This document shows positions 5,201 to 22,797 of a stretch of 36,032 nucleotides of DNA, in pieces (position 1 is the first letter of the stretch; each line of letters opens with the position of its first letter). The notes under the pieces were generated by a model that was not told the DNA's origin, did not search any database, and saw only the letters and a program-made list of their open reading frames with translations. A program made the position numbers and the translations under genes. The stretch lies in contig CBFFRQ010000116.1 in NCBI GenBank assembly GCA_965644315.1, forward strand, positions 1-36,032, in the 5' to 3' direction. Source of the stretch: Caecitellus pseudoparvulus. Taxonomy: Eukaryota > Protista > Bigyra: Bicosoecida.

Positions 5201-7243
5201 GCGCGTTTGGGCCAGGAAACGGCATCGGGCAGCATGAATCTGCTCGTGTGTGAGAAAGCCCCTCCGCCGTGCACCTGCACCCGCACTGGGATAGCCCGAA
5301 TTTCTTCGTACGCAGCCAGTGCGGCCACGTCCGTCGCGCCTGATGCTCCATCGGCCACGGATGCAGTGATCCGCACCAAAATAGTTGCTGAATATTCACC
5401 TGTACCGCACAAAAGCCTCAGTGGTGGCCGTGGCCCAAGACAAAGCTCGCCCCCATGCACGACGCTAATTGGCACCACCAGTTGCCCAGTGGAAGCAGGC
5501 AGCAATATCTCATCCTTTGCCGTGATTGTCTGCAGCCATGCGGCAGTGGAGGAGGTGCCCTGTGACAATACCACTTGCACGTGTAGATCAGCGAAGGATG
5601 CCAACGTTTGCAGGATGGCAATGCCGGAGGCTTCCTTGCTTGGCGCCACTGTCAGCGACACGGTGCCAGGAACCACAGAAAGCAGCGTGGAGCGCATGGT
5701 CACGGGCAGCACATGATCAAGCTGCCCAGCTTTGGACTTGGCATCGTACTCATTCGTGCGCAAGCGCAGGGTGCTCGAAAACAGCCCGCTGACAGCTGCA
5801 CCCGGAGAAACCAGCCACACTGTGAGGATCACGCGCTCACCTACGCCAAGGGACCCCTGCAGCACTCCCGACTCTTCTCGAAGGGAGCCGACGGAAACGA
5901 CGCCCTGCTCATCGGCAAGCACGGAAGCAATGCTGGAGTCAGCGCTTCCTGCGTGGCCACATACACCTGCTGGGGTCCACACTGCGAGCCACGGAGCCAA
6001 GCTAGCGTCCGCATGGTCAAGTGTCCAGGTCAGGGTGCCAGATCCAACGTTTCGCAGAAGCAGCTGCTGCGTGCTTTTGCCGCCTGGGATGACATTGCGC
6101 TCCACCACGCGAGGCCGTATGTCCGAGATCGGCGCGATGACCCGCAATGAAACCTGCACAATGACAGGCAAAAGGTCGGCCACCCGAAGTCGCCCAGGTG
6201 CCCCACCGGCCGCTTCGTTTGAAGCCGTCGAGTTTGCCTGGAAGGTAACAGTGGCCCGGTGTAGGCCAGGAGGAAGGTTCGCAGACTTCATGGTCAAGAC
6301 GACTCCTTGCTGGCCTTGGTTTGCGGGGGGTCGCGCCTTCCGGGATGCAGACAGCGTCAGCCAGCCCTGCTGCTAGCCCCGAAAGGATACCTGTGCGTCC
6401 CAGTGCACGTGTTCGGCACTGGACACAATCACAGCTTGAGACTTTGTATCAGACTGACCGCTGAGCTCAAAAGCAGCGGCCAATTCCACAGGGAAGGCGG
6501 TGAGGAACGGCAGGGGCTGGGGGGTGACGCTGGCGGTGGAAGAGGGGGAGGCACCGGGTGATTTCGTTGGTTGGGCGGACGCACTGCTGGATGCCGTTGG
6601 CGCTGGAGTCCTGCTGCTTGACCGGCGGACAAGGGGCGATCTAGAAGGGGCGATGGAAGGCAGCGGCGCTGAGCTTTGAGCCAAGTCGACCACCTTCACA
6701 GGCACGACTGCAGTCGCATTCAAGCCGGCGACGCCGCGGACGTGAACCACAAGGTCAAATGCTCCCGAGTTCTCAGTCGACTGCAAGTACGCGCTGGGGA
6801 GTCGTGGCAGCCCATCAACTGCGGCAGGCCCAAGCTGCAAGGAGAGGGAGACGACCAAGCGTGGAAATGTGGACGGAAAGGTTCGAGTCACCCTCACCAG
6901 TCAGTCGAGGGCAGACAAGGACCCCAAGCCGCTAGTCTCGCATGGATGCACGACATGCTCAAAACAGCAAGGGTCGCAGCAGAACCGACGTCTGCTGCGT
7001 CAGAGAGAAACAGGGGAGCGCCAACACTGGTCCTTGTCTGGGCACCAACCGCTGGATCGTGCAGTGCCGCCACGATGGTGCGCCCATTTAGGGTCAATTC
7101 TTGCTGCACAGTCGAGGACAGCCACACGGGCGGCCTTGAAGACTGAGTCACGCTGCGAGTTGCTGTCACTGATGGCGTCGCAGAGGGGGAGTTGCTGAGA
7201 GTAGATGCTGTTGACGAAGAGGGCGTGAAGACGCCCAGTGTGC
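2263..7243 (-). CDS. Large surface/membrane protein: Ser/Thr-rich stalks, beta-sandwich-like repeats, Cys-rich (CxxCPxG) region and a C-terminal multi-pass TM domain. 5' exon structure unresolved.
   Basis: The main ORF 2263-6297 has CERCPPGT, CTQCPGGTFAN, CVPGHRGILCGECAEGW and several hydrophobic helices (FWYWELLVVLPRKVLLAAVAV etc.). The same frame continues upstream through a TAG at 6373-6375 to 6897. A further coding-like frame (TPSVTATRSVTQSS) runs about 6900-7243 and needs an intron or frameshift to join. Stop is TGA. Confidence 0.7.
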
Positions 7244-8014
7244 CTGTGGAGTGAATCTAGCGCCTTGTTTTTCCGATGCCAGGTTCAAAGATTGGGCAGA
7301 TCAGATGATTCTCTGTCTCTCCCACCTATAACTTGGCATGCAAGCCGCCATCGCCACACGCACAAGCCAACTCTACAGCATCGGCGAACTCTCGGGGCAG
7401 CAGCCACACCAGAAAGGGTTCATAGCATTCATGCCTTGCAAAAGACTATGCTCTCACTATATTGACCTGCCCATCGCTGCGGACGCCCCTTCCCTGCGTC
7501 AGCTTCTCCAGCATCGACTGCGCCAGTCTTGGCAAGCACAACCGATTTCCGCAGCCCAGCTGCCTGCACTGCCCAGCCCCCTTGCCCTTTTTCGCAGATA
7601 TATGTCAGGAATACAGAGATTGGACCAATATTTGTAGCGTGAAGCCTTCATGCTTGCTGCCCTTCCCTCCATCCCTCGCGCTTTCGTTTTCAGACTGCAA
7701 TGCATGATTGACTGGCTCAGCCCAACGGCAGCGTCAGCTGTTGCGAGTCGCTGCCCAAAAAACCATGGCTGATCAAGAGTGAGGACAACAATTGAGTGTT
7801 TGCACAGCCTGAAGAGATCTCGGATTTGCAAGAATTGATGGTCCGGTGAGCATTAATGGCGGCATGGCCTCAATGTAGGGCGACATCACTCGCTCCTGGC
7901 TCGCCAATCTATGCACGGCATGCCTTGCAAGCCGCATGGAAGGGGGTAACTTAAGAAAAACCTCACTACTAGATCTTCTTTAGAGTGACACTTGTACTGA
8001 CAGTATCATTTGCA

Positions 8015-8467
8015 GCTCTTCAATCGCTAGAGCCAATGCACGCCCGCTTTGGGTCGGTCCGAAACGAAATGCACCGAGCTCAGCGTCAGGATCGCGCCCA
8101 AACACCACCACAGAACCCGGCAGAAACCTTTCAAGAACTGGATTTCTTTGCTGGGCCGTTGCGGCAAAAGTTGCTCCCGAATTCTGGGGGTGCCGCTGAC
8201 GGCAAAAGTTTCTACTGGCCCCACGAGGTGGTCGCCGCACCTCCCGGATGGACGCAAGTCCTGAAAACGTGCATTCGGTACTGTGGGGCCGTGTTTGATC
8301 ACGTAGTAGAAGCTCAACTTCAGGGCGCAGGCGTGCAACGCGGGCAGCCCGCCGCGGACCTCGCGCGGCGAGCCCGCTACACGGCCGCCACGCCTGCCGC
8401 CTGGACCATGCCAAGCCACCTCGCTCCTGGGCGAGGTGGATCGGAAGAGGAGGAAGAAATTGAGTGA
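8015..8467 (+). CDS. Orphan putative terminal exon/ORF of unknown product, with an acidic tail EEEEEIE
   Basis: The open frame 7985-8467 ends in TGA and is preceded by a branch-like CTGAC and a TTTGCAG acceptor ending at 8014. No family recognised. Confidence 0.3.
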   Translation, partial: ALQSLEPMHARFGSVRNEMHRAQRQDRAQTPPQNPAETFQELDFFAGPLRQKLLPNSGGAADGKSFYWPHEVVAAPPGWTQVLKTCIRYCGAVFDHVVEAQLQGAGVQRGQPAADLARRARYTAATPAAWTMPSHLAPGRGGSEEEEEIE

Positions 8468-8895
8468 GACAAGCTTGCTTTGGATTGATAGTGCATTCTA
8501 AGATGTTATTCCGAAATTCCCAGTGTCGTAACGCGCGACAGGGCCGTTTTGGGTCGCGGGGTGGCGCGGTGTGCGCGGAGTCACTGCGGCGCCCCCAACA
8601 CGCCAAGGCCGAAACCCGCACTCAACTCGCCCAACTGGCGCCGAACGCCTGAATGACGACGACTAACATAAAACTACCATGTTCCTGATGGAACATGCCC
8701 ATTTCACAGGGTGACTCACCATGCTTTGTGCAAGATATGTGTACTTAGCAAGCGAGAACTGTGGCCCGCTTCTTTCGAGGAGCAAGTGTGAGGTGAGTGT
8801 GGTGAAAACAAGAGGTGACAATGTATTGAACTTCCTAACCCTGTATATATAGGGGCAACGATGACTGGTTCAAATGGCGGGTGACAGTGATGGAC

Positions 8896-9408
8896 TCAGC
8901 AAGGACAGCTCTTGCCTGAGCTTGTGGAGCCGCCCCCCTTGGGCTTCACTGTGGGGGGTGCCGCTGATAGCTTCGCGCGGCCCATGCGCACTTTGGCAGC
9001 CTCGGTAGCAAGCAGGATGAATGCTTCCCGGACGTTGGCGCCGGTGGCAGCGCTGGCCTCAATGTACGGCACACCACTGCCAATGCTGGCGGCTGCTCTG
9101 CGCCCGGCCTCTTCGCTTACGATGCGCTTGTCAACCAGGTCCACCTTGTTTGCGACCAGTACCAAGGGGGCTCCCTTGCGCAAGGCATCGCCTTTACACA
9201 GCGTCTTCATCCAGCCTCCAACAGCTTCGAACGAGCGGGCATCGGTGACGTCGTACACCAGCATCGCGCCCTGGCACTTCCTCAAGTACGCCTCGGTGAT
9301 GGATAAAAAGCGCTCCTGACCCACTGTGTCCCAGCACTTTACCCGCGTCTGCACGGGATCCCCATTTGGATCCACCTTAAGATCTTCAGTTCGGACTATG
9401 AAGTCCAT
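8896..9408 (-). CDS. Rab-family small GTPase, C-terminal part (aa 46-215), separated from its N-terminus by a transposon
   Basis: MDF (switch I), WDTVGQERF (G3), YLRKCQGAMLVYDVT, ANKVD (G4), EASA (G5), and C-terminal CPC (CxC prenylation motif). Stop is TGA at 8896-8898. Confidence 0.92.
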   Translation of the reverse strand: MDFIVRTEDLKVDPNGDPVQTRVKCWDTVGQERFLSITEAYLRKCQGAMLVYDVTDARSFEAVGGWMKTLCKGDALRKGAPLVLVANKVDLVDKRIVSEEAGRRAAASIGSGVPYIEASAATGANVREAFILLATEAAKVRMGRAKLSAAPPTVKPKGGGSTSSGKSCPC

Positions 9409-9412
9409 TCCG

Positions 9413-9439
9413 AGGGTGCCTACCATAGCCTGATTTCGC
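9413..9439 (+). repeat. Left terminal inverted repeat AGGGTGCCTACCATAGCCTGATTTCGC
   Basis: Exact reverse complement of 13875-13901. Confidence 0.95.
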
Positions 9440-9714
9440 CACCTGTTTGGAAAGTGCTGATTTGGGCTGTGATCGACTTTTTGATCGGCGGTCATTCGTG
9501 ACCCGGCGCACAATTTCAGCCTCGTCACAAAATTTTCACCCCATACAACAATGCATTTTCACACTTTTTGTCGTCCGTTAGACGCTCCATAGCTGGCTAC
9601 CCTGAGCAACGCTGTGCGGGACTCTGGTCTTGCTAGACGCACCTTCATGATACAGCAGTCACAGCTTGTATTCTACATTGTACAATACCATTAGTCGTGG
9701 ACTGTCAGGGCTTC

Positions 9715-12042
9715 ATGGCTGCTCCAGGTGGTGCTACGGGCGTCCGTTTGCAGGTACGTGTGAAACGCCAGTGCCTCTTTGAGGCACCCAAAACGAGACA
9801 AGCGCAGAGTAATTCTCGACATCAATAGTGGCAGTCGACGAACAATTCTCTTCTCTGTCCGATTTCATTGCAGATCAGTGATGAAATTGAACATGCAGCG
9901 CCTGAAGCGAGAAGTACCAACGCAAGCGAAACGCTGGCAGGGCGGCGTGGAACCAAACGCCCACGGTCTCCTTCGAGTGAGACCTCTTCTGCTCATACTC
10001 TACAGAAGCTCTTGTCTGTGATGAAAGGTGGTATTGAAGCCATCCTAGGCCTTCAAGGGTCATTGCTGAAGGCACACGAGGACATCATGCGCGACTCAGG
10101 GCTTCTTCGCAGGGTTCAACGCCACCAAGCGTCAGGTGTACCTCTAGACCAACGCAAGCCCAAACGCCCTGTACTTCCAGATGTCAGTGATGCCTGTGCC
10201 GAGCGTCTTCTCGCCTCCGAACGTGATTGTCGCTCATATACTGGCTTGGGCTGTGACGCTGCGCGGACGCTGATGGCAGCCGTCCTATGCTCGGTCCAAG
10301 ATGACCCAGTCGCCTGCAAGCAGCTGCTCTCCGTAGATGTAACATACAGCCCACGGACGCGTCTCCTGGCGGCCTTCATGCGAGTGAGGGGTGTGACAGC
10401 TCGCGTGGCTGCTGCATTGCTGTGCTGCAGTGAGATGTCTATCGGCCGTTGGACAAGAGCATGGCTTCCCTATGTTTCTGAGTATGTCATGCGCTACTTG
10501 CGCTGTGAGGTTCCCCCCTCTGTCCGTGAGGCCGGCAGGCTGGCATATAGTGGAACCCTTGGGCAGGTTGTAGGCGCCGTAGACGGCATGACTGTGCGCA
10601 TCCATGGCGACAACATGCAGTTTTACAACAGCCACCACAAGCACGAAGGGATTGAGTATGTGGTTGTTGTTCGCTTGGATGGCATGCCATTGGGGATAAG
10701 ACTGGCAGGCCGAGGGTCACAGAGTGAGCAGGCGAACGCTGCCCTGCTTGTCCAAGAGCTTGTCGACACCGGGGTACTGCATGACGGTGACATCCTCCTG
10801 GGGGACGCATTGTACGCCAGTGACTCAGGTTTCATCAGGGCAACTGCTCGCCCATCACATGAGATGCAGTTGGCCAAAGCAGCTTCTGCTCGACTCGAGT
10901 CTGACCTCGCCACGGAGTTGGAAGCCCCGTCCACTCAGATGCGTGCAACCGCAGCGCTGCTCTTCGTGCATGACCTCACAGACTCCTGGATGTCGGGCTT
11001 GCGCCTCGTTGTGGAACACTTCATTGGTGTCGTCAAGTCATTTAACTTGTCATTCAGCAATCAGCGGCCGTGTGCGCCTTTCTACTTGCGCGCCGACACT
11101 CTGCTCGACGCCTACGTGCACTGCGTAGTTGGGTTTGTGGCGTTCAGAATGGCTGTCGAAGGAACTCGTCTGCGTTCACGGACCTTCTTTCTGATCAAAA
11201 CTACGTGTGTGGGGCCACATAGACTCGCAGCCCTGGTTCGCAAAGCTTTGGTTGATCCTGCAACTGGCCTTGTGCAAAGCGAGGCAAAGTACGAAACCGA
11301 CCCTGCAAAGCGAAAAGTTCGAAGGTGCAGGGCACTTAGGCAGCAACTGTACGCAAAGTTGGTCGTGCCACGTCTTGGACAATACCCACACCCAAACACA
11401 ACAATTGCAGATTGTGCAGCATACTTCTTGAGAGCATTGCAGGTACTGCTTGATGTGGATGCCTCTGCTATCGACGAGATCGTTCAGGGGGGTGTCGCTG
11501 CAGTGAGAGAGAAAGGGGGCCGTGTAGAGGGCTCTGGTGGTAGTGTTCAGGTTCAGAGACACGGCCACAGTAGCGGTTTTGTTGCTGAAGTGGCAGTACC
11601 CAACACAGTAGCTGCATCGGTGCTGACGGCTGAACCAGATAGTGTACCAGGTCCACGCAGGTCCAGCAGAAGAAATGAGCGCCTTCCCGTAGAGCACGGG
11701 GATATTCGACGCACGGGCATTGAGGAATGGGGAACAGACGGAACGGTTGGCATGGGATACTGCCTCATGGAGCAGCAATCTGGCGAGGTGTGGGTTGCAC
11801 ATTGGTTTGACCCTGACGGGCAACCTGAGATGAACGAAGATGGTGCAGTCCTGAGCACTGAACTGGCGACACAAGCTGACCTTGCCGCCCTCAGACGAAA
11901 GACAGAACCTGTGCGACTACACGATGTGCAAGGTGAGCTTGAGGCAGAGTGCCCGCTGATTGCCTCAGCCATTGAATGGCAAGAAGCGCGGAAGAGTGGT
12001 GCTTGGCAGGCTCAGCTCAGTGCTGCGGAGCAATGCATTTAA
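9715..12042 (+). CDS. Harbinger/ISL2EU-like DDE transposase (DDE_Tnp_4/HARBI1-like) with a long C-terminal extension. Predicted exons 9715-9753 and 9874-12042.
   Basis: RSYTGL and an HTH-like SPRTRLLAAFMRVRG...CSEMSIGRW, then catalytic triad contexts VGAVDG, LLGDALY and RLVVEHFIGVVK, plus FYNSHHK. A phase-0 intron 9754-9873 (CAG|GTACGT...TTGCAG|ATC) links to ATG 9715. Stop is TAA at 12040-12042. Confidence 0.88.
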
Positions 12043-13492
12043 CCTTTCATGCGACGCATTTCAGCCAGTATCTCACTCAAGGTAGACTTCATTCCCCCGA
12101 TATCCATCGCCATGGTTGCTTGAGTCGCTTCCATCTGCGACAGTCGCGCATCGTGCTCCTTGACGGCATCCACAGCCATTTCAATTGAATCAGCAACTCT
12201 TACTGCATAGCTAGCGACCCCAGCTAGCTCTTGAGCCCTTTGTGCAGCATGTGTGGCTGCGCGCACATCCGATCCCGTAGTGGGGGTGCCACTGCCAGAA
12301 GAAGATTCAGGAGCTGAGACCGTTCCTTCCCGCCGCCTTCTCGCCTTCTGCCTCTGCGCTGAGTGCATCTGTTGCTGCTGCTCGAATGCAGCTGCTACAT
12401 TGGAACCCACTTCGAGTGAACGTTTCGTTCTCCTCGCAGTCTGGCTTCCGCTACTGCTTGGGCTGAGGAAAGAGTCTGTTGAAGCATCAACGCTGAGTTC
12501 AGAACCGCCGACGGCAGAGCTGTCCCTCACGGTCGCTGCCGAAGCTCCAGATATGCTAGCCGGCACCACACCACCCAGCAGGATCGAGTCAGTAGCCTGA
12601 CGTGCATGGACATGAGCCTCAGGCAAAAGGCCCGTGTCTGACAGCCCTGTCTCACCTGCTGTGTAGCTTCTGGACGAGCGATACTTACCACGGCTGACTG
12701 CCATGCCCTTGACCTGCTGGTGCAGGTCAGTGTATAGCCCAACTGCCCAAGCTTTAATCATCATGGGCATGTTGCTTTGGCAGAGGATACCGATATCACC
12801 CATGAACTCTTCTGGGGGAGTACTACAGAGCCAACACTGGCACCGGATGCAGGGTTGGGGTACAGCACTTCCAAGACTGCTCGCAGTGTGACTGCTTGCG
12901 GAACAGGTCGAAGAAGCTGTCCGCGCTCCCCTTCACTCAGCCTGTCGAAAATGTGCCGTTGGACACGCTGTAGGCGTTCGGCACACTTCTTCATGCTTGA
13001 TGTTGTCCGGGCTTGGTTGCGCAAGTACAGAGCGACGTTGCGCTCGGGTAGCCTCAGTAGCCCTTCTGTAAGGGCCACGTCAAGTTCATGGCTTTGTGGT
13101 AAGGAGCACCTTGCCACGCCTGTTGCACCAACGGCATCCAAAGCTTGCCATGGCGGATACAAACCCATATCCTGTGCCTTCGGTATGCACACCGTCCGTT
13201 TTGGCCCTGCATCAGCCTCAGCCGCTGTCTGAGCCAAATCAGGCAACGCACAGTTCAGCAAATGTTGAAACGGAGAGGACGAGTCACTTGACATTGACGG
13301 GGTAAGCGTTGTGTCCCCTCCTGGCGCGTTGATCTGCCGTAAAAGGAACTTGTGTGCAGCCTGCAAAAAGCGAAACGCCACGTCAAAGACCAAATGACTA
13401 CACACGCGCGTCAGTCCATCCAAATACATGCTACGTACCATAAACACAAGCCCCGCAATCACGTTAGCAGTATCCTTTGGTTTAAAGCTCAC
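12039..13492 (-). CDS. Transposon accessory ORF2 of unknown family with a C-terminal coiled coil, split into two frames near 12815
   Basis: Two overlapping ORFs (12761-13492 and 12039-12803) lie inside the TIRs and join with one extra base in the G5 run at 12814-12818 (VVLP-PEEFMGD). There is a basic NLS-like RQKARRRR and a heptad C-terminus. The start codon is uncertain. Confidence 0.6.
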
Positions 13493-13874
13493 TGAAACGG
13501 TGGGGCATGCGCATTTGGTGCGGACTTCAAAGCAACATGAAACGCCAACGGCGGACGAACTTTTGAAGCCAGGTGTGGCACAATTTCAGGGAACCGACGA
13601 ATTATTTTTCAGTGGTAGCACAAGAGTACCCAAGTACACATAGTCGCGCTGGAAAATTATGACAGCGACGTGAGAAAACCTGATGAATCGATTTTATGCT
13701 GTGGTGGTGATTGGGCAAGCTCAAATTGCTAAGCGAAGCTCATAGACGTGTTCCTCAGATAAGATACATTTTTGCCAGACTATAGTTGGTGATGACCCTT
13801 TCAGTCACACACACCCAAATACCCCGCGCGCTCTCAACAAAATGATCCCAGGCATCACACAATCTGGACCCCTT

Positions 13875-13901
13875 GCGAAATCAGGCTATGGTAGGCACCC
13901 T
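13875..13901 (-). repeat. Right terminal inverted repeat GCGAAATCAGGCTATGGTAGGCACCCT
   Basis: Exact reverse complement of 9413-9439. Confidence 0.95.
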
Positions 13902-14035
13902 CCGATGGTGGTCACAAGCGAAGGGCTGAACCGGTTTTCCTCGTATTGCAGCAGCAGGCTGGACTTCCCCACCCCACTGTTGCCCAGTGTGATTAAATGC
14001 ACTGTCAACTCTGTGCTTGCGCTACCGGCAGCCAT
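13901..14035 (-). CDS. Rab-family small GTPase, N-terminal part (aa 1-45)
   Basis: ATG at 14035 gives MAAGSASTELTVHLITLGNSGVGKSSLLLQYEENRFSPSLVTTIG, with P-loop GNSGVGKS and switch-I TIG. It joins MDF at 9408 exactly when the transposon and one TSD copy are removed. Confidence 0.92.
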
Positions 14036-14456
14036 GGTTGTGAGAGCAGGGGAATCTGCGTTGCACGTGGAGCGTGTCGGAGTGTGCGCAAATTCCGCGA
14101 CATGCCCTGCGGACAGCTTCAGGGCTGTGCCTGGGCAGCGAAGGTCACATGCCAGTCCTACTTGTGCTAATGGCCCATGCCTACGTACGCTTTCGAGAAG
14201 AGGATGGTGGCGTTTGCCTTGCCGTGTGCGCGCGCGGTCCAGGCGTGTCGCGGAGGGAGTGCCTGGAGTAGCAGTACTTCGCACCACCACTTGACGGATC
14301 CTGGCCACGGGGCAGTCGGGACAGATCGGCACGTGAAGCGATGAACCTCGAATAATTGCCCGTTTGACGTATTTGTGACATTAATTTAACAGGCATGGAA
14401 GGGTGCCCCGAGCGCAGTGAGGCTCAATAGCTGAGGAGTGCGCTGCAACCGACTCA

Positions 14457-15926
14457 TCACAGCTCCTCACGTGCAGGCTGGTGCTCTCTGGAAAGCCCTG
14501 CTGCGTGCACAACCCGATCCAGCTCAGCCTGCGCGACTTCAGCCACGACAGCAGGGCTGTACTGCCGCAGCATGTCCTCCCTTGCCTGGCTGCCAAGCTT
14601 TTGCGCGAGGAGTGGGTCATCTCTCAGAGTTCGCATGGCCTAGCGCAGGTGCGTCCTGGAGGGCTCAGCCATGAGGTGCCCAGCAAAAGGACCGTCTGGA
14701 ACAGGCCTCAACCCTGCTGTGGGCAGGGGGATAGAGTTCTCCTCTGTCATGAACTGCGTGGGCCCGCTCCAGTTCGTGGCGATGATGGGCAGGCCCATGG
14801 CCATTGCCTCCACGTGGGGCCGCCCCCAGCCCTCCCCCCGAGAAGGCAGCACAAACGCGTCAGCTGGGGCATACAGGCGAGGCAACTTGGCATCACTGAC
14901 GGTCGGCACCAGCTGCACTTGTGGCAAGCTGCTGTACGGGCGCCTGAAGAAAAGACCAACCTGGCCCTCCCCGAGCTGCACCGTCTGGGGCGTGCCCTGC
15001 ATGTGCAAGGTGGGCACGTGCACGGCGGCAGGGTCAGTCGCATTGGCGTGCACGCGCATGACGTGCGTCTCCGGAACTGCGTGGGCATGCGTATCATCCA
15101 TGTCCACACACCACCAGGTTGGGTGCCACACGTGACCCTCGCCACTCCTTTGCAACTCCAAGTCATGCAACCTTGCAGAAGGATCCAGGAAACTGGGAGC
15201 ACGCCCTACAAAGCCACGCCCATCATGCGCGTGGGCCGGCTGCTCTGCCATTCGCTGCTTGATGCCCTGACAGTCGTGCGCCTGGCGAAGGTGCAGCTGC
15301 ACGGCGCTGGAAAAGTCACCCGAACTGTGGTAGGCTGACGTCAGCACGTGCAGGGCGACTCGCTCGCCCCCGTGAAACTCGGCCCAGAACGCGCTCAACA
15401 GCACATCCCACCCCTTCCGGTGCTCCCACTTGAACACGGACAGGAAGTTGAACGTGTCGCTTGGCACGCGCAGCTCATGCGGCGGCAGAGGGCTATGCAG
15501 TGCAGGGTCAAAGCGGTGGGTGTCTACCGCCTCAGGGACGACGCGAATGCGGGAAGGGTCCACGCCGCCGCTGCGGACGAAGATGTCTGCGTGAAATTGA
15601 GTTGGGACCCACACCTCCCCCATGCGCTGCAGGCGCGCTGGCCAACCGTCGGGGACTCTGTCCGTTTCGAACATGGTCCGGCCGATGGTGATGGCGGCGC
15701 TGGAGAGAGGGCACAAACTCGTGTGATAGTGCGCCGGGTGCCATGCCCCTGGTTCTGCGTGGCAGACAATGATGGTGGGCTTGTCTACAGGAAGCGGCGT
15801 GTGGTACAGGGCCAGCAGCTCCTTCCGGACGTGGACGTCCAGACCCGCGAGGAAAGCCCGCGAGAAGGAATCCCCATGCTGTGCATAAATCAACAGACGC
15901 CTCATGGAGGGGGGGTGCGCGATTGT
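14457..15926 (-). CDS. GT4 (glycosyltransferase group 1) protein containing an in-frame TAG at 14640-14642. 5' end unresolved.
   Basis: IGRTMFETD, EVWVPTQFH, FLSVFKWEHRKGWDVLL and DAFVLPSRGEGWGRPHVEAMAMGLPIIATNWSG (EX7E motif). After the TAG the frame continues AMRTLRDDPLLAQKLGSQAREDMLRQYSPAVVAE, a typical GT-B terminal helix pair, to TGA-TGA at 14454-14459. Confidence 0.85.
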
Positions 15927-16923
15927 CATCAAGCAACGATCCACCTGGTCAATGGAGAGGTTCACGCCAGCTTGTACGTGAACATAGGAATATAGTGGAA
16001 GTGGGAAAAAATGATCCGGTGCCCAACTATCGTGTGCGCGAAAGAGGCACATTGTACTGGTTCCTGCGAACCCACCTTTCAAAGGCCCAGCCTAGCCAAC
16101 TGCTACATGCAAGGACGGTAACTTCTAAAGCCCCGCTCCTGGCCCTGACACGGACTGCACTGGACATTCAAGTTCATGAAGGCTTCAAGTGAATTCGAAG
16201 GTTGCTTTCCTGGCCGGTCAGTGCACACTCTTCGCCCTCTGACCCGCCCCCACTCGCCTGCCCAAGGCGGCATCTTCACCTGTCAGAGCTGGGAAGTGCA
16301 CCGCCAACACTTGAGCTGCTTTCTACACTGGTCCGTACCTTGGACGTTTCAATGGCTTCTAGGGTCTTTTCTCGGCGGCAGTAGCAGGCGGATCAGATCG
16401 TGCTCAACTGAGGCCAGCGATTGTTGCTTGCGGCAGAGGAGGAGCCCTTGACCCTCCTGGCGGTTCAGAGGCAGTACGTGGTGAACGTGGCGGCTGTTCG
16501 AGGAATTTGCATCCAATTGTTGGCGCACCTGTCTTCCTGTCTGACATTCCACTTGCACGGCCAGGCGCCTTCCGCCCTGTCGAACTGCCTCATCTCCACT
16601 CACTTGATCTTTTTCAGGGTCTCCATGACACGCCGCTGGAGTGAATCCACTACCTTGAGTTCCAGTCATGTCAGGTCCAGAGCCTGGCGAGTTCAGGTAA
16701 ATCGCTGGCTCCCCTCCAACAACTCGGCACCACAAGTCACAAGTTCCATACCTGCAAGCCTTCTCCATGGCGACAGCGAACTCAAGCGGCAGCAGCGGCA
16801 CTTGAGAGCTTCAAACATCAGGTATGCTGGCATGATGTCAAGTCAGATAATGCACATACGAGCTCAAACTGGGAAGGCCCTTGGACATATCGGGTCCAAA
16901 CTATGGTGCTGACAACTCGCAGC

Positions 16924-19900: not shown

Positions 19901-22797
19901 CCACTGCGCGACGTGAACTGCGGGTGCGGCATGCGCTTGTCCGCATCGAGGACGTGCTCGCAGAGGTAGTCCATCGTTCGAGCCAATGTTGCCGGGGAGC
20001 GCAGTTCAGCTTCGTGCACGCTGGATGCTGCTGCAGAACGCTGGTGTCGCTTGATCATCAGATCTTGGGCCCTGCCTGGCATGCCCTCAACTTGGGTTTC
20101 AAAGGCGGACAGTTCGCAGTCTGCGACTCGGCGATCACGCTCACTCCTGGGACACATGTCGGCACACCTGCCTTTCATGCCTGGCCCCACCATCGGCCAG
20201 CCTTTGTATGGGCCACTGGCCTGGTCAGTGGTGGAAACTGGTCCCACATCCTGCATGGAGCGAGATGCTTGGGCGTGAATGAAGTTCCTTGGCCGATCTT
20301 GACCGGCTGAAACCAAACTCGCAGCAGGTGCGTGGTCAGTGAAGCCTGAGGCGTGACGTTCGGCTCGTCCGGGGCTAGCAGGAGCCCTGCGCGCTTCCGA
20401 CTCATCAAGGCTTGACGCTATGCGCACCTGAAGACCTTGGGGGTGCAGTGGCAAGTCTTCCTCTTCATCTTCCTCCGCCTCACCATCACTCCCTCCACGC
20501 ACCCACTCCTCAGCAGACTTCGTCCACACCCCATGTCCAGACGACCACACCACATGCACCCCCTTCCCTGACACCTTCTTCACCCTCCTCAGCCCCGCAG
20601 CCGCCCCTGCATGGTCGGCGAACCTCACCAATGCCAGGCCCTTGGCCGCACTCCACCACACGTGCTCCACTTGTCCCGCAATTGCAAATGCAGCTGCAAT
20701 GGTATCCGCGGTGGCTTGCTTTGGAACGCCCCGCACAAACAGCTCCACACCCTCTTCAGCAGCCCCTGCATCAAACCCACCCTGCCGGCGTCCGTTAGGC
20801 ACAGATCTGGCCTTATTCGGCACTGATCCGCGCCTGCTCGAGACTGAGACTGCAGCCTGCATCTGCTGCTCAGCGGCGGAAGCCCTAGAAACATACGCAT
20901 CCCCGCTGAACTCTTGCCCAACTTGATCGTCCTCTACATCAGCATCATACGCCCCTGTGGTGATCGTGAAACGGGGCATGTCAGAGTCTGCCCCAGCTGT
21001 ACTCTCACCTCCTTCACTCCATTCCACCACACCAAGGCCACCATCTTCCTCCGCCTCACCATCACTCCCTCCACGCACCCACTCCTCAGCAGACTTCGTC
21101 CACACCCCATGTCCAGACGACCACACCACATGCACCCCCTTCCCTGACACCTTCTTCACCCTCCTCAGCCCCGCAGCCGCCCCTGCATGGTCGGCGAACC
21201 TCACCAATGCCAGGCCCTTGGCCGCACTCCACCACACGTGCTCCACTTGTCCCGCAGTTGCAAAGACAGCTGCAATGGTATCCGCGGTGGCTTGCTTTGG
21301 AACCCCCCGCACAAACAGTTCGTTTCCTTCACGCTCCCGAGTCTGAGAACCTTGACGAGCCCTTCCCGACGTGCCAACGCTGCGAGCAAAACCATGCTCT
21401 TCTTTGCGAGACGCCCCCCCTGAAGGCCTCTCTCGCTTGGCTGACTTCTGCTCTCGAGTCGAGTTTTGTCCACCAAAGTGGGAAACTTGCGCCGGGTGAT
21501 CCTGGGCTTCAGTTGGGTCTGAACCAAGAAACCCATCCGCACTGTACAAACCTGCACTCCCACGGACTAAACCAGCCGCTCCAACTCCAGCGCCCCCACC
21601 TCCGCCCCCGAACAGGTTCAATCCACCACCGCCTCCACCGCTACCTCCACCACCGCCCACCATCAGCCCACTCCCACCACCCCCATCCGCATGCCCCCGG
21701 CCCTTCCCCTTCCCTCCACTCCTCCCACGGCCGCCCCCAGACCCGCCGGGCGATGTGCCCACTCCAACTCCAGCGCCCCCACCCCCGCCCCCGAACAGGT
21801 TCAATCCACCACCGCCTCCTCCACTTCCCCCCCCGCCCACCATCAGCCCACTCCCACCACCCCCATCCGCATGCCCCCGGCCCTTCCCCTTCCCTCCACT
21901 CCTCCCACGGCCGCCCCCAGACCCGCCAGGCGATGTGCCCACTCCAGCGCCTCCGCCCCCAAACAGGTTCAATCCACCACCGCCTCCAACACCGCCTCCA
22001 CCGCTACCTCCACCACCGCCCACCATCAGCCCACTCCCACCACCCCCATCCGCATGCCCCCGGCCCTTCCCCTTCCCTCCACTCCTCCCACGGCCGCCCC
22101 CAGACCCGCCAGGCGATGTGCCCACTCCAGCGCCTCCGCCCCCAAACAGGTTCAATCCACCACCGCCTCCAACACCGCCACCACCGCTGCCACCACCGCC
22201 CACCATCAGCCCACTCCCACCACCCCCATCCGCATGCCCCCGGCCTTTCCCCTTCCCTCCACTCCTCCCACGGCCGCCCCCAGAGACCCCAGGCGATGTG
22301 CCCACTCCAGCGCCCCCACCCCCGCCCCCGAACAGGTTCAATCCACCACCGCCTCCTCCACTACCCCCACCGCCCACCATCAGCCCACTCCCACCACCTC
22401 CATCCGCATGCCCCCGGCCCTTCCCCTTCCCTCCACTCCTCCCACGGCCGCCCCCAGAGACCCCAGGCGATGTCCCCACTCCAGCGCCTCCGCCCCCAAA
22501 CAGGTTCACTGCACCACCTCCACCACCGTTTGGCTGAAGTCCAGAACCGATGCCACCGCTTGTTCCGTGCGCACCACCGAGGCTAGTGGCAGTGCCGCCC
22601 CATGTAGATTGGCTTTGCATGCCAGATCCCATTCCTTGACTGCTAGAAGCCCCCATTCCCATCAACGGCTGGCCTGCGCCAGCGCCAAACACGCCTGCGG
22701 AAGTTGACTGTGAGACAGACTGGGTCTGGGGCTGAGATTGCGAGCCAAACCAGCCTCCAAGACTGCCGAACAGTCCACCAGCGCCAAATGGGTTCAT
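16924..22797 (-). CDS. SAC3: SAC3/GANP family protein (TREX-2 mRNA export scaffold) with an N-terminal FG/Gly-rich region and two RRMs
   Basis: MKGRCADMCPRSER, IKRHQRSAA, LRSPATLARTMDYL, FNFTFDRTRAIRSDFSVQG, HEQIVRFHVL and EAEMRSYFVL are SAC3/GANP hallmarks. ATG at 22797 (MNPFGAGGLFG). First stop is TAG at 16924-16926; the next TGA is at 16864-16866. Confidence 0.88.
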   Translation of the reverse strand: MNPFGAGGLFGSLGGWFGSQSQPQTQSVSQSTSAGVFGAGAGQPLMGMGASSSQGMGSGMQSQSTWGGTATSLGGAHGTSGGIGSGLQPNGGGGGAVNLFGGGGAGVGTSPGVSGGGRGRSGGKGKGRGHADGGGGSGLMVGGGGSGGGGGGLNLFGGGGGGAGVGTSPGVSGGGRGRSGGKGKGRGHADGGGGSGLMVGGGGSGGGGVGGGGGLNLFGGGGAGVGTSPGGSGGGRGRSGGKGKGRGHADGGGGSGLMVGGGGGSGGGGVGGGGGLNLFGGGGAGVGTSPGGSGGGRGRSGGKGKGRGHADGGGGSGLMVGGGGSGGGGGGLNLFGGGGGGAGVGVGTSPGGSGGGRGRSGGKGKGRGHADGGGGSGLMVGGGGGSGGGGGGLNLFGGGGGGAGVGAAGLVRGSAGLYSADGFLGSDPTEAQDHPAQVSHFGGQNSTREQKSAKRERPSGGASRKEEHGFARSVGTSGRARQGSQTREREGNELFVRGVPKQATADTIAAVFATAGQVEHVWWSAAKGLALVRFADHAGAAAGLRRVKKVSGKGVHVVWSSGHGVWTKSAEEWVRGGSDGEAEEDGGLGVVEWSEGGESTAGADSDMPRFTITTGAYDADVEDDQVGQEFSGDAYVSRASAAEQQMQAAVSVSSRRGSVPNKARSVPNGRRQGGFDAGAAEEGVELFVRGVPKQATADTIAAAFAIAGQVEHVWWSAAKGLALVRFADHAGAAAGLRRVKKVSGKGVHVVWSSGHGVWTKSAEEWVRGGSDGEAEEDEEEDLPLHPQGLQVRIASSLDESEARRAPASPGRAERHASGFTDHAPAASLVSAGQDRPRNFIHAQASRSMQDVGPVSTTDQASGPYKGWPMVGPGMKGRCADMCPRSERDRRVADCELSAFETQVEGMPGRAQDLMIKRHQRSAAASSVHEAELRSPATLARTMDYLCEHVLDADKRMPHPQFTSRSGMPGSPSLLDIFNFTFDRTRAIRSDFSVQGYGVGRNDALAMQVHEQIVRFHVLSIYELCEEPDFQGGLNDAELNNALKTLMTLYSDARKRHETSLLSHDTDSGVPVDQEVLASPAEAEMRSYFVLMMMPKKDEHSSIINSISTLPAHILADKHMQIALRALSFFVCELPAQYFRVCQEAPYLQACLMHRGIPNMQLVAAKLYDESAKHGRPLSEAAAQKMFGVDSQSALDTVISTLGGSVSRSDRGTKLSFRSTPLLPASAKPTFTPSLVRSPHSGPSQQGARASRAAIVCARRWALEARAPVYGPRTSLSWKRVAALRGVPADRQGPSTPVLEASTHSTSALRNIAALDALAKGADATILPDTGTSEGGVSGMAAPRSAESAGKGQTPMQPDDLSPLPSQPAAEEAKAVEGVGLPPALDWLSPLPSDKSRKVPGKPPQALSPAALFAPSSSPLQLPTGLGLVKNQSVPVLLPGAPKNLELGTSEAPKGPLETSHIDAIALLGATKSSSSPRHAPETSLAWASKPPATHTSAPLSAHDAASSLQLAVSESLVAPSIRASAPLASVPNTELSVTAASSAGQSHEPRHAPPLGAVKSVADSPSASSPLAGATSESSDTGDSEDDESLVSEPGLSAFSLADTPNAAAEVSAHAFHVVPTDEVAFKAAKSMICRLGRPSFSLQPSMPGSAAPSAAFAEVCSWLLREVPQGECSEQAVPIANFDDLGHARALLQTSNKVILLLTSPALIPTLPGGVLPVVVSWQPSKPWQLCVDAEAALWGLLPPDRLEPGHATGSPDHPLVQSLLSPVLDDLAALSSQRVVVDTAAFFRWFQTASNQVCEAVNPKGSRFDWTPARASLGGSTCTPACLALALGHVAKQLSQEPFVRPLPRTWCMTEPIEPLLRAEAEQLSLAKSGRKEHVDIVLEQSALPPKSPAATKRPRSSGTPISIRHRRKVFRTTKSPEHDSLSQLAEELQAQAALETASELSLATSIAQGL
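20466..21318. repeat. Near-identical 277-bp internal duplication (20466-20742 and 21042-21318) encoding two RRM domains
   Basis: ELFVRGVPKQATADTIAA...GLALVRFADHAGAAAGLRRVKKVSGKGVHVVWS occurs twice, offset 576 nt, with only a few substitutions. Confidence 0.9.
21580..22530. repeat. Coding minisatellite, about five ~180-bp units, encoding NLFG + GRGRSGGKGKGRG Gly-rich repeats
   Basis: The unit GGGLNLFGGGGAGVGTSPGGSGGGRGRSGGKGKGRGHADGGGGSGLMV repeats with variable poly-Gly lengths. Confidence 0.92.

Follow-up and report, generated by a model that had tools for sequence, protein, structure and literature searches.

Among the described PHIS transposons, PIF/Harbinger elements have a 3-bp TWA target-site duplication (TSD) and a second open reading frame (ORF) with a Myb/SANT domain (PMC4482050). 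In the same description NuwaI duplicates CWG, NuwaII has the target C|TNA|G, which leaves its duplication ambiguous between 3 and 5 bp, Pangu has an ANT TSD, AG/GG termini and a partner ORF without a recognisable Myb/SANT domain, and ISL2EU has an AT duplication, a THAP domain on the transposase and a YqaJ partner (PMC4482050). The partner ORF of PHISTA, which has a TA TSD, is likewise without a recognisable Myb/SANT domain, and the TSDs given for Harbinger relatives are 0, 2 and 3 bp only (PMC12730594).

The DNA analysed here (the window) is a stretch of 36,032 nt from the marine protist Caecitellus pseudoparvulus (contig CBFFRQ010000116.1, GCA_965644315.1). It was compared with the genome assembly (G000; 30.6 Mb, 215 contigs) and with public contigs of four sequencing runs, of which X1 and X3 are runs of the organism and may themselves be the source of the assembly, X5 is an independent aquaculture metagenome and X8 is the fourth. 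Here it is proposed, with a probability of about 0.82, that a PHIS-related cut-and-paste transposon recently inserted into a duplicated, Rab8/Rab1/Sec4-like gene, within its switch-I codons Ile44-Gly45.

The transposon spans 4487 bp (9414-13900, forward strand), carries two convergent genes and is flanked by the 5-bp direct repeat TCCGA (9409-9413 and 13901-13905), whose right copy covers the last 2 nt of the Rab Ile44 codon and the whole of Gly45 and which is the longest in-register direct repeat at the junctions. Its ends, GGG..CCC, belong to terminal inverted repeats (TIRs) of 26 bp, the left starting with GGG (9414-9439, forward) and the right (13875-13900, reverse) being its exact complement, so that the sequence-only reading was correct in calling the TIRs perfect; the 26-bp TIR has six matches in the genome versus none for a reversed control. 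That reading had also set the element at 9413-13901 with a 3-bp CCG TSD, and both values are revised here, because the A and T ascribed to the TIR belong to the TSD. Since TCCGA begins with T and ends with A, the window site alone could also be read as 3-bp CCG with a 27-bp TIR (AGGG..CCCT ends). This is excluded by the second full copy, on contig C92, which has TTTGT on either side of GGG..CCC and whose flanks are not complementary at that position; the reconstructed empty site is identical under the 3-bp and 5-bp readings. Both TSDs end in A in the window orientation (TCCGA, ACAAA), and a 4-bp TSD with an extra, asymmetric A at the left end therefore fitted both assembly copies equally. This reading is disfavoured by the symmetry of the ends and by a third insertion site, in one X5 contig at depth 2, in which the element starts at G9414 and is preceded by T, so that the left end falls at G9414 and leaves a 5-bp TSD. 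The X5 site supports this left end and TSD length but is not proof of them, being one contig; complete TSDs were read at two sites (window and C92), where the chance of a 5-bp direct repeat at both is p ~1e-6.

The C92 copy (G000:C92:127127-131614) differs from that of the window by four substitutions and one indel over 4487 bp (0.09% by substitutions, 99.89% overall identity), and these are the two full copies in the genome. It splits an ORF of 904 aa for a membrane hybrid histidine kinase (HisKA, HATPase_c and receiver domains; L007:1930-9137), whose empty site is fully open, and each of the full copies interrupts an ORF that is otherwise open. Most of the X5 pieces along the element differ from it by 0-1 letters and come from another insertion site. 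The earlier claim of a very recent insertion by a probably active family stands as far as recent insertion and mobility are concerned, which are well supported by the two near-identical copies and the X5 element elsewhere; present activity is what we infer from them. Further matches comprise a 166-bp trace on C50 and a right-end relic of 900 bp, 92-93% identical, which lies on C23 and C212 and occurs in metagenomes as well. The C23/C212 relic rides inside another TIR element, and its flank is therefore not a TSD. An element of 2.2 kb with 48-bp TIRs (L008:2589-5889, L009:4070-7005) carries the 900-bp right end of the family and adjoins the 5' part of an element of a related family; the metagenome contig L077 has the same structure plus an inner DDE_1 element. 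Run X8 contains the relic and the C62-type locus described below, and neither the full element nor the window-type Rab body. Scans of JGI metagenomes with the TIR pattern and the transposase had no matches.

The transposase gene is predicted to consist of a first exon of 13 codons from the ATG (9715-9753, forward), a 120-nt GT-AG intron of host-like form (GTACGT..CAG; 9754-9873) and a main exon (9874-12042) with a helix-turn-helix (HTH), an RNase H-like core and a C-terminal domain, which together probably encode 736 aa. The DDE triad is made up of D250 (10582), D324 (10804) and E394 (11014), conserved in the relatives except for one degenerate copy. The match to DDE_Tnp_4 (PF13359) has 25.5 bits, just above the cut-off of 24.8 bits, and the same domain was found in five of five relatives; four relatives from this genome match it at E up to 0.1. 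The HTH_23 match is weak. The predicted fold is HARBI1-like: for the structure model (mean pLDDT 64), the best Atlas match is a HARBI1 cluster (TM 0.72 by target), and the PDB matches are DDE transposases and integrases. A word search with the transposase core returned no outside relatives, and exact look-up of the window proteins found none present. Related transposase families in the genome have 25-49% identity. Among these relatives, one carries a SAP domain, and two families have several copies whose transposase is divided between two frames at an identical point (652+217 aa and 619+222 aa; examples C89:404025-405856 and C22:29305-30950), other copies of both families being continuous; the split may go back to one mutation common to these copies, to faulty assembly or to a small intron. 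By its transposase (DDE_Tnp_4/HARBI1-type with HTH) and its layout of TIRs and two ORFs, the element appears to belong in PHIS and to work like a Harbinger-type cut-and-paste element. The transposase would bind the TIRs and make a 5-nt staggered cut in the target, without a strict target sequence.

The second gene, ORF2 (12039-13441, reverse strand), encodes an orphan partner protein, 467 aa long on C92, which is collinear with its counterpart in a related family (~30% identical). The convergent stops of the transposase and ORF2 overlap in a shared TTAA (12039-12042). No Pfam match at E 10 and no Atlas match was obtained for ORF2, only its own relic was found among 1.84 billion representatives, and its predicted fold (pLDDT 36) is unusable; it may contain a very diverged helical domain. 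It would be a helper subunit, in the role of the Myb/SANT protein of Harbinger. The window ORF2 is frameshifted at ~12813 by one base in a G run, having five G where C92 has six; X1 has six G and X3 has five, but X3 shortens other homopolymers too, so a real frameshift and a homopolymer error stand at about even odds. The description of the transposon as intact is therefore not secure.

Removal of the insert with one copy of the target leaves, as had been proposed, a 648-nt ORF for a stop-free Rab of 215 aa, with VTTIGMDF and a CPC tail. Its 5' part (13906-14035, reverse strand) runs from Met1 to the first base of Ile44 and includes the P-loop and the start of switch I, and its 3' part (8896-9408, reverse strand) runs from Met46 to the stop and includes switch II, G4, G5 and the CPC tail. 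The Ras domain (PF00071) was found on both halves, and the protein qualifies as a Rab GTPase, a class marked by a Ras domain with G1-G5, RabF motifs and C-terminal cysteines. All of G1-G5 are present, as had been noted, but G3 reads DTVGQ and not DTAGQ. The best solved-structure matches are Sec4, Rab1B and Rab8A, and the G boxes and CxC tail are like those of the Rab8/Rab1/Sec4 clade; unlike that clade, this Rab is specific to its lineage and shares only 40-45% identity with canonical members. An intact, uninterrupted Rab of 215 aa is encoded on contig C62, with 87% amino acid and 89% DNA identity to the window Rab. It is the best match of each half (95% and 85%), so that both come from the same paralogue, as the sequence-only reading required, and an origin of the halves in different paralogues was rejected.

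The window Rab lies in a partial segmental duplicate (8887-15974; 2.6 kb without the transposon) of G000:C62:305879-308461, ~90% identical. The duplicate also holds a copy of a glycosyltransferase gene (GT4; 14457-15974, reverse strand, lower bound approximate), cut on its 5' side and with a premature TAG (14640-14642) in place of a Gln codon of the C62 copy, after which the frame runs on for 60 codons to the original stop. Metagenome contigs, at a dS of 0.012 to C62, have its gene order glycosyltransferase-Rab-UPRTase, and the Rab-UPRTase order is kept in a 57%-identical relative, which indicates that C62 is the ancestral, syntenic Rab locus and the window Rab the duplicate. A squalene-hopene-cyclase-family gene (L072:1-1382) lies near the ancestral Rab locus. 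Homology to C62 ends 9 nt past the Rab stop, so the 3' UTR has been replaced. To the left is a subtelomere-like repeat block (6400-8842) with ~60 genome matches, many within 30 kb of contig starts. To the right, 16070-32010 matches contig C111, with identity of 83% near the junction rising to 99%, and C111 is without the block at that junction. This right-hand region holds SAC3/GANP, UCH, adaptin and Sad1/UNC genes and looks like the end of a diverged haplotype. The SAC3/GANP ORF, of 1964 aa, contains five copies of a 180-bp tandem unit (21622-22525), with a related stretch on C88.

In the two runs of the organism, depths read from contigs, which do not equal copy number, were 41-42 for window-type versus 83-95 for C62-type pieces and 26-28 versus 47, and the element had twice the window-type depth. 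The junction piece had a depth of 40.6 versus 42.1 for the window-type flank in one run and of 26 versus 28.4 in the other. The left-junction piece (9260-9442) had 0 differences in two runs, with 29 letters on the element side, below the 31-letter bridging threshold; the pieces listed do not include the right junction. No joint skipping the element, as expected of an empty site, was present in the public contigs of the four runs. The half depth, the agreement of junction and flank depth and the absence of a skipping joint fit a block that is present on just one homologue and there invariably includes the insertion, and thus the duplicate is probably hemizygous, beside the subtelomere-like repeat block.

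Between the window Rab (8896-14035 without the insert) and the C62 Rab (L017:1462-2109), dS is 0.255 and dN 0.076, and the differences are concentrated in the two switches and in helix 3/loop 7. Switch I and II (28 residues together) contain 11 of the 27 amino acid changes (p 8e-5), and 14 of the 16 polarisable changes fall on the window branch (p 0.004), at sites that are kept by relatives at 57-73% identity. Several changes of the window branch (F48, T83, S104) shift towards canonical Rab8/Rab1 residues. Outside the switch and helix-3 regions, dN is 0.022 and dS 0.197 (dN/dS 0.11). The pattern suggests a working paralogue that changed its effector surface; before the insertion, the duplicate would have been under purifying selection outside the switches, with fast change inside them. 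Synonymous change in switch I is also high (dS 0.96), the N/S ratio does not differ significantly between the switches and the remainder (p 0.12), and the dead glycosyltransferase copy likewise has a low dN/dS (0.23), so that positive selection is not shown.

These same three observations speak for a reading in which the duplicate Rab had already been non-functional, so that its switch changes would be clustered mutations or patches of conversion and the transposon would have hit dead DNA. The copy may indeed have been dying before the insertion, its 3' UTR having been replaced and its G3 carrying A74V; however, the reading as already dead DNA is doubtful, because there is no stop or indel over 215 codons at dS 0.25, and only seven nonsynonymous changes lie outside the variable patches where ~28 would be expected if they had been neutral on the window branch alone (p 2e-6). 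Gene conversion from another Rab was rejected as the source of the switch changes, as no donor was found among 30 Rab loci.

Similarly tentative, and compatible with the insertion into a duplicate proposed here, is an origin of the segment not by duplication within the lineage but by introgression from a diverged haplotype or from a sister lineage, with later rearrangement. It is favoured by purifying selection on both genes, whose dS of 0.18-0.25 greatly exceeds the 0.012 that separates C62 from environmental populations, and by the gradient of identity to C111 in the adjoining DNA. No source lineage was found, though, and the C62-type switches persist in relatives with 57-73% identity, from which it follows that the window-type protein is the derived one.

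An unspliced transcript of the interrupted gene reaches a stop four codons into the TIR, giving a stub of 49 aa, and no GT-AG pair removes the element precisely. Cut-and-paste excision is expected to leave a footprint, which would be frameshifting if it were 5 bp. The Rab copy is most likely null and covered by C62; the cell would tolerate the insertion because C62 supplies the conserved Rab. The sequence-only reading had offered a knockout, a heterozygous allele or rescue by splicing or excision; of these the knockout is retained, with the main explanation, a redundant duplicate of C62, having been missed, and the public contigs contain no uninterrupted allele.

Heterozygosity, with an uninterrupted allele of the same diverged Rab absent from the assembly, is accordingly improbable: contigs do drop variants and the insertion is very young, but the contigs of the four runs contain no skipping joint, the junction depth equals that of the window-type flank, the assembly has no second window-type locus, and among 8000 scored candidates nothing came near the 87% identity to the C62 protein.

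Of about the same low probability is a more elaborate reading of the element itself, as an active, undescribed PHIS group with a 5-bp TSD, an orphan helper and a C-terminal Tudor/PWWP-like reader that steers insertion into gene bodies. The C-terminal transposase domain of ~110 aa (11668-12000) is lineage-wide: five or more families of the genome, with no fewer than 25 copies among them, have it. The chromatin reader and its targeting are the uncertain part, since the weak structural alignments, over 57 residues to the tandem Tudor of BAHCC1 (Z 5.5, rmsd 2.2) and over 90 residues to a PWWP domain from a trypanosome (Z 5.0, rmsd 4.0), score at background level and sequence searches with the domain gave no match to support it. 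Both full copies do sit in coding exons, but with genes packed this densely, two exon insertions out of two are not evidence that insertion is targeted.

Introner elements are known as TIR transposons in coding exons with GT and AG near their ends, and a comparable rescue of the Rab mRNA by splicing out the element, although conceivable from a terminal GT/AG pair in frame and an acceptor (CAG|G) that looks normal, is very unlikely. This pair, the only in-frame one at the ends, has its GT 2 nt inside the TIR and its AG 29 nt from the far end, and splicing there would lengthen switch I by 12 residues. Its donor, GTGCCT, is without the G at +5 that is seen in the credible host introns (GTACGT, GTGAGT, GTGCGT, GTGAGG, GTGAGC, GTGCGG), which measure 71-113 nt, whereas this intron would be 4.46 kb and hold a gene on the same strand. 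The element thus differs from introners in its lack of precise in-frame removal, its weak donor, its 4.5-kb length and its two genes. Misassembly, a repeat having been joined into the Rab gene, can practically be dismissed, as the contig is small and near repeats but the TSD is exact at 5 bp, both Rab halves are collinear with one paralogue, and the left-junction words occur in two runs with zero differences.

The locus thus reads as an ordinary case in which a recently active family has knocked out a redundant gene, and the redundancy removes the apparent paradox of a cell with a broken core trafficking gene. The insertion is a clean natural one, in which an empty site that can be checked against the paralogue fixes both the ends and the 5-bp TSD, and the Rab duplicate appears to preserve a history of rapid change in its effector-binding switches and of subsequent loss.

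The recently mobile family lies outside the described PHIS groups: by their described TSDs and partner domains (PMC4482050), it is none of PIF/Harbinger, NuwaI, NuwaII, Pangu or ISL2EU. Like PIF/Harbinger, the element has a DDE_Tnp_4 transposase with HTH and a HARBI1-like predicted fold, two genes in ~4.5 kb, and short TIRs starting with G; unlike it, the element has a 5-bp TSD without consensus in place of 3-bp TWA, an ORF2 in which no Myb/SANT domain was detected and the extra ~110-aa domain at the C-terminus of the transposase. The TSD and the undetected Myb/SANT partner place it outside Harbinger in the strict sense, and the earlier label "Harbinger-type" is not kept in that sense. It resembles NuwaI and NuwaII in GG/GGG termini, two ORFs and a length of 4.5-4.7 kb; however, neither CWG nor CTNAG is matched by TCCGA or ACAAA, no Myb/SANT partner was detected, and, as the two duplications are not symmetric, a 3-bp duplication with fixed flanking bases cannot account for the 5 bp. 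The element has no AT TSD and no THAP or YqaJ match, unlike ISL2EU. With Pangu and PHISTA it shares a partner ORF without a recognisable Myb/SANT domain, and its 5-bp TSD sets it apart from both (ANT and TA, respectively). It is fairly probable, then, that the element represents an undescribed group or lineage of PHIS with a 5-bp TSD.
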